38,561 bases of DNA from Macrostomum lignano (GCA_002269645.1 NIVC01003402.1:1-38561); one strand, 5' to 3'; counted from the stretch's first letter, positions 31,601 to 32,974 are shown. Program-made: numbers and translations. The notes: generated by a model not told the origin, from the sequence alone.

Positions 31601-32974
31601 GTCGAGTCGTTCAAGTTCGCTTACGCGAAGCGCTCCGGTCTGGGCGACGCGGCATTCGTGAACGTGACCGAGCTGGTGGCCAACATGACGAGCAGCAGCT
31701 ACGCGTCGGAGCTTCGCAGTCGCATCACCGACGATGCCACGCACGATGTCAACTACTATGGACCAATGTTCGAGTGGAAGGAGGACTCTGGCACGACTCA
31801 CGTGTCTCTTGTGGACTCTGACGGCAACGCCATCGCCATAACGTCAAGTATCAATACACAGTGAGTTGACAGAGAGTGCATTAAAGTGCTTTCAACTATT
31901 GTGCACATACTTGTAGCATATTTAGTCTGGATTGCTAATAACAGTATGTACGTACTTCATCATAGACTGAAAAAATCCAGAGCGTGCAGTATATGCTTGT
32001 TCGAGACAAGCGAAAATATTGTACAAATTTACAAGCTCATTATACGATCCGTATTTGGCTGATTTTGATTTAAAAATGACCCAGCAACTTGATTTCTCTG
32101 TTCTTCAGTTTCGGCTCCCGAGTCCGAGGCAACCGCACAGGCATTTTCTACAACAATGTAATGGACGACTTCTCACAGCCAAACAAAACGAGCAATTCTA
32201 CTCTACCTCCAGCGCCCACAAATTTTATCGAGCCCGGCAAGCGTCCGATGTCTTCAATGGCCCCGACTATTCTCGTCGACTCCAGCGGTGCCGTCCAGTT
32301 TGTCAGCGGCGCTTCTGGTGGCTCGCGCATCACCACGGCTGTCGCTTACGCACTGGCCAGACAGCTGTACCTGAATGAGGCGGTCAAGGCGGCTGTGGAC
32401 TCCTACCGACTGCATCACCAGCTGGTGCCGAATTGGATCACTTATGATAAAGACAAGTGTGATTTACCCGAGGTAATTTCCCTACATATTACTAAGGTCA
32501 CATTTGCGCCACACCGCGACGCTTGATTAAGATCAAACAGTCATAAAGAATTGAATTCTAAAAAACGCCTTTATCGCAGATCCTGAAAATTTATATGATG
32601 CACTTTTCACTGCCAAAAACATTAGCGAGATAGGAAGTTTTGTCATTGCAAGCGTAAACAAGTCGCCTCAATCCTCTAGAAATACCATCGATGTCCATTC
32701 ATGATGCCTAATTTGAAGACATAAAAATCAACTATGGATTGAGCTAAGTCAAGGTGGAGGTTACAGTGCAATAGTACAGCATGCAGCAAGCATTATCTTG
32801 TGACAATGGCGTGAAAACGCATTCCAGATCATCGAGTCGGAGCTGCGTCGCAAAGGGCACGAGTTTAAAAACGTGACTCAATTCAGCGTGGTAGAGGCCA
32901 TTCAACGCCTGCCGGACGGTCGATGGCAGGCCAATAGCGACTTCCGCAAGCCGTCAGATACTGGTGGCCTATAA
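28680..32974 (+). CDS. GGT: Gamma-glutamyltransferase paralog 3, divergent active-site region (621 aa if exon 1 is correct)
   Basis: Exons 28680-28705 (MCSGDIEEG, tentative), 29139-29284 (poly-Val TM), 29485-29722, 30443-30935, 31409-31860, 32109-32472, 32828-32974; total 1866 nt in frame; catalytic TTHVS retained. Confidence 0.9.
29179..29235 (+). repeat. (GTT/GCT)n trinucleotide microsatellite within GGT-3 exon 2
   Basis: Read in frame it encodes AVAVVVVVVVVAVVVVAVA. Confidence 0.9.
29795..30399. repeat. Perfect (TTAG)n microsatellite, ~150 units, in GGT-3 intron 3
   Basis: Direct inspection. Confidence 0.98.

Follow-up and report, generated by a model that had tools for sequence, protein, structure and literature searches.

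The window analysed here, a 38,561-bp contig of the flatworm Macrostomum lignano (GCA_002269645.1), is intron-bearing eukaryotic DNA that holds four tandem gamma-glutamyltranspeptidase (GGT) genes, three on the plus strand and one on the minus strand, as located by a listing of open reading frames (ORFs) and by tblastn with the window's own exon translations. GGT-1, GGT-2 and GGT-4 keep every conserved residue of the donor site and the lid, and GGT-3 alone departs from them. Judged from sequence comparison, GGT-3 belongs, as a variant, to a well-known enzyme family, and the cluster of changes that it carries is real and non-random. The reading that we favour, at a probability of about 0.5, is that GGT-3 encodes an old, transcribed and still functional enzyme, in which the N-terminal nucleophile (Ntn) hydrolase machinery would be intact and the donor alpha-amino subsite and the lid would have been specifically remodelled.

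GGT-3 is an intact member of the GGT family

Exon models were built from splice sites and paralogue alignments. The four genes share a layout in which a small exon bearing the ATG is followed by a transmembrane exon and five ectodomain exons. GGT-3 extends from an ATG at 28680 to a stop codon at 32974 in seven coding exons; its ORF is intact, its introns are GT-AG throughout, and its 621-aa product, a type II membrane proenzyme, is identical to the final 621 residues of PAA51556.1, the 5'-partial annotation under which the gene is already listed in GenBank as a hypothetical protein. The annotated proteins of GGT-2 and GGT-4 are PAA51555.1 and PAA51557.1. Exon 2 of GGT-3 is homologous by position to the transmembrane exons of the other three genes. 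The features of GGT-3 are the following.

28680..28705, plus strand: exon 1, coding part, short cytoplasmic tail (MCSGDIEEG-), the N-terminus of the transcript-derived P0121/PAA51556.1; GT donor at 28706
29139..29284, plus strand: exon 2, signal-anchor/transmembrane segment, poly-Val from a (GTT/GCT)n microsatellite; AG acceptor, GTAAGC donor, frame joins exon 3
29485..29722, plus strand: exon 3, where the heavy subunit begins; recent conversion with GGT-1 (synonymous divergence, dS, 0.23)
30443..30935, plus strand: exon 4, Arg107 equivalent (CGC 30474-30476, in FRESAP); 24 unique residues, which make it the block most specific to GGT-3
31409..31860, plus strand: exon 5, homogenised across all four paralogues as far as Asn392
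31790-31795, plus strand: exon 5, autocleavage site Gly-Thr (GGC ACG), with the Thr381 equivalent at 31793-31795
31847-31849, plus strand: exon 5, T399S (AGT); Asn401 (AAT) at 31853-31855, then bases 1-2 of the His403 codon
31861..32108, plus strand: intron 5, GT..AG, interrupting the codon for residue 403
32109..32472, plus strand: exon 6, with E420V (GTA) at 32158-32160 and Asp422/Asp423 at 32164-32169
32191-32202, plus strand: exon 6, lid S-N-S-T; S438A (GCG) at 32212-32214
32251-32256, plus strand: exon 6, Ser451/452; oxyanion Gly-Gly at 32317-32322
32828..32974, plus strand: exon 7, including the stop codon; Lys562 equivalent kept

Against the Pfam profile PF01019 (G_glu_transpept), GGT-3 scored 540.5 bits (E = 5.7e-162) over profile positions 7-511 of 512. 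In MEROPS this gamma-glutamyltranspeptidase family is T03, among the Ntn hydrolases. An AlphaFold2 model of GGT-3, calculated from a 49-sequence alignment, had a mean predicted local distance difference test score (pLDDT) of 89.6 and a predicted template modelling score (pTM) of 0.85; within the ectodomain, confidence was lowest in the cleavage-site region and around the lid, with one block averaging 71. Foldseek aligned the model with the heavy chain of human GGT1 at a template modelling score of 0.90-0.91 (1.7 Å) and with its light chain (4gdx_B) at 0.94 (1.7 Å), and also with bacterial GGT precursors, among them the E. coli precursor at 0.89. The predicted structure confirms the family and the fold, an alpha-beta-beta-alpha Ntn core with heavy and light subunits, and cannot decide specificity.

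The hallmarks of the family that are present in GGT-3 comprise the whole-domain profile match, the fold, the nucleophile Thr, the oxyanion Gly-Gly and the carboxylate clamps Arg107, Ser451 and Ser452. Missing are the Thr at 399 and the full alpha-amino set (Asn401, Glu/Gln420 and Asp423), of which Asn401 and Asp423 are present and residue 420 is Val. The conserved Asn and aromatic gate of the lid-positive subgroup (eukaryotes and Gram-negatives) are absent. GGT-3 likewise lacks the Asn that class IV cephalosporin (glutaryl) acylases have at the Asp423 position, the state of EcGGT D433N (PMC8062742), and keeps the Asp-Asp pair at 32164-32169.

Substitutions in the donor site and lid

The end of exon 5 (31841-31860) reads ACG TCA AGT ATC AAT ACA CA, and the T at 32109 completes the codon CAT to give T-S-S-I-N-T-H. 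Within exon 6, GTA (Val) at 32158-32160 sits in N-N-V-M-D-D-F, and AGC AAT TCT ACT at 32191-32202 encodes the S-N-S-T of T-S-N-S-T-L-P. In the four-protein alignment the corresponding motifs are TSTINTY, NNEMDDF and TNYYGLP in GGT-1, TATINTY, NNEMDDF and TNFFGLP in GGT-2, and TSTINTY, NNEMDDF and TNYFGLP in GGT-4. An initial annotation of this DNA had reported the three altered motifs of GGT-3 at these coordinates, and they read as it described, in the paralogues as well as in GGT-3.

Human numbering was assigned by aligning GGT-3 with a 569-aa primate GGT1 (P0107), in which T381, N401, Y403, E420, D423, F433, S451/452, G473/474 and K562 match the residues named for the human enzyme (PMC7949050). 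On this scale GGT-3 carries T399S, Y403H, E420V, N431S, Asn at residue 432, F433S, G434T and S438A, and keeps Arg107, Thr381, Asn401, Asp422/423, Ser451/452, Gly473/474 and Lys562. The earlier manual mapping of Tyr403, Glu420 and lid Phe433 is therefore correct by alignment with P0107, and the equivalents of Arg107, Asn401, Asp423, Ser451/452 and Gly473/474, said to be retained, are all there. The change of TST to TSS, a point that the initial annotation had passed over, replaces the second Thr of the catalytic dyad, Thr399, and preserves the hydroxyl. In the numbering of GGT-3 itself, Ser399 is S448 and Val420 is V469. The lid loop is of normal length and has lost its conserved residues; its S-N-S-T makes a new N-S-T sequon at the lid tip (N481 of GGT-3), which adjoins a shared N-K-T sequon. 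In human GGT1, Asn401 binds the alpha-nitrogen of the donor, Asp423 and Glu420 each form a salt bridge with it, and mutation of Asp423 abolishes activity (PMC7949050). The contact of Glu420 with the donor alpha-amino group, which the initial annotation had taken as an established role, is one of these two salt bridges (PMC7949050).

Departures from conserved positions are clustered

The comparison set consisted of the four paralogues and 107 homologues from a protein search, and a column was called conserved when at least 90% of the 107 homologues agreed (n = 116 columns). GGT-3 has private departures at five conserved columns (T399S, E420V, N431S, G434T and S438A), and the aromatic residue at 433 is also lost. 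All five lie within residues 399-438, a 39-residue span, with none at the remaining conserved columns; when five of the 116 columns were drawn at random in a permutation, the probability of their falling in such a span was P = 5e-4. The clustering asserted earlier is thus significant, and it affects the donor site and lid of an otherwise intact, long-constrained gene. GGT-1, GGT-2 and GGT-4 have a few private or shared departures of their own at conserved columns, none of which touches the gamma-glutamyl site.

Several of the altered positions are close to invariant. Asn431 is Asn in 107/107 homologues and residue 433 is aromatic in 107/107, each being Ser in GGT-3; Thr399, also Ser in GGT-3, is Thr in 104/107 and Ser in 3/107; Gly434 is Gly in 99/107 and Ser438 is Ser in 106/107. 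The Thr381 equivalent is invariant (107/107). Residue 420, Val in GGT-3, is Glu in 97 of the 107, Gln in 4, Leu in 3, and Ala, Gly and Asp in one each. Residue 403 is variable (Tyr 53, Arg 15, His 13, Phe 12), and Y403H, which had been singled out as a notable change, is an ordinary variant shared with 13/107 homologues.

The aliphatic state at 420 is found in other animals. Three Branchiostoma (amphioxus) GGT1-like paralogues, P0085, P0088 and P0093, carry E420L, and the Acanthaster GGT1-like protein P0038 carries R107K, T399S, E420A, G434C and G474A; E. coli GGT has Gln at residue 420. The Leu of the three amphioxus paralogues and the Gln of E. coli indicate that the position tolerates change. 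The combination of E420V with loss of Asn431 and of the residue-433 aromatic was seen in 0/107 homologues. As far as these alignments reach, the loss of conserved lid residues is unique within the 107-homologue sample, and the change of E420 to an aliphatic residue has natural precedents. When the 68-aa variant segment served as the query of a protein search for other relatives with E420V or without the lid residues, a single uninformative 66-aa fragment was returned.

Gene conversion, rates and selection

The GGT paralogues are gene-conversion mosaics, and GGT-3 is 73-77% identical in protein sequence to GGT-1, GGT-2 and GGT-4. With GGT-3 residues numbered without exon 1, blocks 161-190, 311-430 and 506-550 are nearly identical in all four GGTs; block 311-430 makes up most of exon 5 and stops nine codons short of residue 399. 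GGT-3 equals GGT-2 across residues 485-505, and its exon 3 closely resembles that of GGT-1. Residues 431-484, which hold the active-site and lid segments, form an unconverted island in every paralogue pair. An escape from conversion by the active-site segment of GGT-3 alone was considered and rejected, the island being unconverted between all pairs. The gene had been described as conversion-homogenised, a description that holds only in part: GGT-3 is a mosaic, and 24/42 of its unique residues lie in exon 4 and not in the active site.

Within the island dS is 1.5-2.6, that is, saturated, and the ratio of nonsynonymous to synonymous divergence (dN/dS, omega) is about 0.11 for the pairs that include GGT-3. 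With dS saturated in unconverted sequence and omega this low, the GGT family must be old and the pocket region of GGT-3 strongly constrained overall. Over the whole gene, pairwise dN/dS between GGT-3 and each paralogue is 0.23-0.29, and Tajima relative-rate tests with a distant paralogue, P0005, gave 33-34 unique changes against 24-29 (p > 0.2), with no acceleration. In the long term GGT-3 has evolved under purifying selection (omega 0.1-0.3). Several of the variant codons of GGT-3 lie two to three steps from those of the paralogues (GAG to GTA, GGC to ACT, AAT to AGC), and such multi-step changes indicate that the variant state is long-standing rather than recent. Import of the variant residues by conversion from P0005 was discarded, P0005 having NNEMDDF and TNSYDLP.

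Copies of the locus and transcription of GGT-3

The assembly contains at least three further copies of the locus, L001 (NIVC01000330.1), L002 (NIVC01000588.1) and L003 (NIVC01004791.1), which are 97-99% identical to the window; extensive duplication has been described for the M. lignano genome (PMC5730564). The 171-nt coding segment of GGT-3 from NAIAITSS to PGKRP is nucleotide-identical in 4/4 locus copies. Assembly or sequencing error behind the GGT-3 variants is ruled out, four independent contigs agreeing base for base.

GGT-3 of L002 (17503-22266) is fully intact, with an ATG, GT-AG introns and 613 codons from the transmembrane exon. It sits between the annotated GGT-2 and GGT-4 of NIVC01000588.1 and has no gene model. 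The marks of a processed or decayed pseudogene, namely frameshifts, stops, lost splice sites and an omega near 1, are absent from the window and L002 copies of GGT-3. L003 was set aside as evidence of pseudogenisation, the several scattered 1-2-nt indels in the first 3.7 kb of its contig looking like assembly errors. Frameshifted copies were found for GGT-1 and GGT-4 too, so that broken copies are a property of the redundant genome and not of GGT-3 alone. The transmembrane microsatellite of GGT-3 (29165-29235) differs between copies by a 3-nt indel in L001 and by Val/Leu and Ala/Val replacements in L002.

The genome annotation was made from RNA only, using StringTie/TACO, a de novo transcriptome and TransDecoder (PMC5730564). 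Given this transcript-only procedure, and a 5' exon in the GGT-3 model that homology could not have predicted, the gene model derives from transcripts. Evidence for the expression of GGT-3 is confined to this transcript-based origin of its annotation.

Neighbouring genes and other features of the window

The other three GGT genes of the window are the following.

3677..7953, plus strand: GGT-1, transmembrane exon to stop; active site canonical; exon 3 lacks 1 nt near 4092
24381..27892, plus strand: GGT-2, transmembrane exon to stop; intact, canonical active site; equals P0125
34187..36899, minus strand: GGT-4, transmembrane exon to stop; intact, canonical donor site; equals P0128

The deletion in exon 3 of GGT-1 (3970-4197), near 4092, changes CTCGGCGG to CTCGCGG and shifts the frame. 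GGT-1 is intact on two other contigs (P0004, P0130), and between the window and L002 copies it shows a ratio of nonsynonymous to synonymous changes (N:S) of 23:6 and an omega of about 1.3. Barring an assembly error at the deletion, GGT-1 of the window is a probable pseudogene. GGT-1 and GGT-4 (exon 6, 6285-6648 and 34709-35072) share P445A/G446N and read IAANKRP rather than IEPGKRP at two columns that are conserved in more than 90% of homologues, and GGT-4 further carries S82N and R561H, which adjoin substrate-contacting residues of the Cys-Gly site. Intron 6 begins with GC instead of GT in GGT-2 (26695, GCAAGT) and GGT-4 (34708, minus strand, GCAAGC), at a position where GGT-1 and GGT-3 have GT.

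Most of intron 3 of GGT-3 is taken up, at 29795-30407, by about 153 units of an (AGTT)n microsatellite with 99% matches, and the alignment with L001 suggests that the length of this array differs between copies. Two further tandem arrays lie at 37825-38470 (29-bp unit, 22 copies, several open frames, expanded in L001) and at 7104-7654 in intron 6 of GGT-1 (degenerate 10-bp unit, about 54 copies). Mobile elements occupy part of the spacer between GGT-1 and GGT-2. An intact 1636-aa gag-pol ORF at 9466-14376 (minus strand), with Peptidase_A17, DUF1759, RVT_1 and Integrase_H2C2 domains, belongs to a BEL/Pao long terminal repeat retrotransposon; this stretch has no counterpart in the L002 locus copy and therefore represents an insertion difference between copies. 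An intact 474-aa ORF at 16780-18204 (plus strand), which has DUF3504 and QRICH1 domains and matches Phage_integrase weakly (Crypton-like tyrosine recombinase), is likewise missing from L002, and remnants of a Tc1/mariner-type DDE transposase (DDE_3) are found on both strands at 22910-23900.

Discussion

Human GGT1 (PDB 4GDX and 6XPC) and GGT-3 share 43-44% identity, the same predicted fold and an organisation as type II membrane proenzymes. They differ by Glu420 to Val, Thr399 to Ser, Tyr403 to His, His81 to Gln and Ser438 to Ala, and by the lid, which is N-x-F-G in the human enzyme and S-N-S-T, with its new N-glycosylation sequon, in GGT-3. GGT-1, GGT-2 and GGT-4 resemble GGT-3 in exon structure and, because of gene conversion, in several near-identical blocks, whereas exon 4 and the poly-Val transmembrane segment set GGT-3 apart from them. 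The amphioxus paralogues P0085, P0088 and P0093 and Acanthaster P0038 are, like GGT-3, natural animal paralogues with an aliphatic residue at 420; unlike GGT-3, the amphioxus proteins keep the canonical lid (N-x-F-G) and Thr399.

Mutants of related enzymes bear on several of the altered residues. Tyr403 binds the glycine carboxylate of glutathione (GSH), and Y403A leaves 50% of hydrolysis and less than 10% of transpeptidation; human GGT5, with Pro403 and Gln81, still cleaves GSH (PMC7949050). GGT-3 has His403 and Gln81. In Helicobacter pylori GGT (HpGGT), T398S, at the position equivalent to Thr399, matures normally and has about 5-fold lower activity, with about 20% kept, and HpGGT Y433A, altered at the lid aromatic, loses most activity (PMC8062742). 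EcGGT D433N/Y444A/G484A and BsGGT E423Y/E442Q/D445N gain glutaryl-7-aminocephalosporanic acid (glutaryl-7-ACA) acylase activity, and these engineered acylases, like GGT-3, lose the alpha-amine-binding carboxylate (BsGGT E442, human E420) and the lid aromatic (EcGGT Y444, human F433) (PMC8062742). The lid-less Bacillus GGTs have open sites and accept polymeric substrates (PMC8062742). BsGGT and BlGGT, as we propose for GGT-3, have no functional gating lid, and their open pocket has been linked to bulky or polymeric gamma-glutamyl donors; the Bacillus enzymes are without the whole lid loop, whereas the loop of GGT-3 is of normal length and only its conserved residues are lost.

On the favoured reading GGT-3 would still autoprocess, and a weaker Thr-Thr dyad, together with the loss of one alpha-ammonium salt bridge out of two, would lower its canonical gamma-glutamyl turnover. 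The lid would no longer gate the pocket and may bear a glycan; the open, solvent-exposed site would favour hydrolysis over transpeptidation and would admit bulkier donors, or ones whose alpha-amino group is modified or missing. By analogy with the mutagenesis literature, an altered specificity of GGT-3 is plausible, and the retention of Asp423 makes a true switch to glutaryl-type donors less likely than a loosened recognition. The initial annotation had suggested altered specificity, such as towards non-glutamyl acyl donors, or a hydrolase bias. These directions, glutaryl-type donors and more hydrolysis, do parallel the engineered mutants (PMC8062742); the kept Asp423, the omega of 0.11 and the frameshift in one copy count against the proposal, which was overstated where it leaned on homogenisation and Y403H.

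A number of observations weigh against the favoured reading. In the engineered GGT acylases and the class IV cephalosporin acylases the decisive change puts Asn in place of the Asp423 equivalent, where GGT-3 keeps Asp. T399S, F433S and E420V are each expected to lower activity rather than to redirect it. Positive selection on GGT-3 is not claimed, given an omega of 0.11 with saturated dS in the island, and the substitutions are not datable here, the sample including no other Macrostomum sequences. GGT-3 of L001, on a 433-kb contig (9887-10111), carries a 13-nt frameshift deletion in exon 3, as a result of which the N-terminus of PAA85373.1 (P0001) is truncated and in the wrong frame; the same copy has nine private nonsynonymous changes. 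PAA85373.1 takes a splice donor that lies 40 nt into the intron and is effectively a mis-annotated broken copy of GGT-3. Among the assembly copies, variable codons are 16 nonsynonymous to 9 synonymous in GGT-3 and 18:36 in GGT-2 and GGT-4 together (Fisher p = 0.015), an excess that fits recently relaxed constraint; most of it comes from the broken L001 copy and the poly-Val transmembrane exon, and between the two intact GGT-3 copies N:S is 6:3, counts too small to interpret. A search of full text and supplements for six Mlig gene identifiers found no copy-resolved expression data.

Much of this could also be accommodated if GGT-3 were a redundant paralogue in the course of being lost, with selection relaxed and the active-site and lid changes being early loss-of-function hits that cripple catalysis, which we judge unlikely but far from negligible. 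Four tandem GGT genes in several whole-locus copies offer a setting for such loss, as do the L001 frameshift with its excess of private nonsynonymous changes, the N:S contrast of 16:9 with 18:36 (p = 0.015) and the lowered activity of other GGTs altered at the equivalents of T399S, F433S and E420V; there is an animal precedent in the third venom gamma-GT of Aphidius ervi, judged inactive from mutations in its active site (PMC4035087). Decay, however, should scatter over the 116 conserved columns, and all five departures fall within 39 residues (P = 5e-4), leaving nucleophile, oxyanion hole and carboxylate clamps untouched. Nor are an omega of 0.11 for the segment, an unaccelerated rate, multi-step codons on saturated dS and two intact copies, in the window and in L002, what progressive loss would leave behind, and the frameshifted copies of GGT-1 and GGT-4 mean that a broken copy, such as that of L001, is not peculiar to GGT-3.

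The substitutions might instead be near-neutral, and GGT-3 an ordinary glutathione-degrading GGT that differs mainly in the place or time of its expression (regulatory subfunctionalisation). This we consider improbable: E. coli has Gln at residue 420 and a few animal homologues have Leu, Ala or Gly there, His403 occurs in 13/107, HpGGT T398S retains about 20% activity, Asn401 and Asp423 still bind the alpha-amine and Bacillus GGTs function without a lid, but GGT-3 has lost the invariant Asn431 and the always-aromatic 433, and with them Gly434 and Ser438, most of the activity is gone in HpGGT Y433A, and the absence of any kinetic effect from six co-located changes is unlikely. It is very improbable that GGT-3 is a non-catalytic pseudoenzyme, kept as a binder (of gamma-glutamyl compounds, for example) or to serve as a structural or secreted protein. 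Long-term purifying selection alongside changes expected to weaken catalysis, new glycosylation sequons near the pocket and the persistence in wasp venom of GGT-like proteins with mutated sites would all suit such a role; the preservation of residues that serve chemistry only (Thr381, Gly473/474 and the hydroxyl at 399) would be unexpected were catalysis dispensable. A bolder form of the remodelled enzyme is quite doubtful in its turn, namely that the donor pocket of GGT-3 has no need of a free alpha-ammonium and that the lid is permanently open, possibly held so by a glycan, with glutaryl-like, N-modified or macromolecular gamma-glutamyl substrates. If true, GGT-3 would parallel, in nature, the variants evolved in the laboratory that turn a GGT into an acylase.

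The scope of these findings is one gene family in one flatworm, and they are relevant to enzymologists of GGT and to the evolution of paralogues under gene conversion. Should GGT-3 prove crippled, it would exemplify how, in a recently duplicated genome, the early loss of function of a redundant copy starts at the pocket. If GGT-3 is active with altered donor or lid behaviour, it would be a natural test of how much of the alpha-amine subsite and lid a GGT needs and of how specificity shifts inside a tandem family partly homogenised by gene conversion, and it would give enzymologists a natural template that parallels the engineered glutaryl acylase variants.

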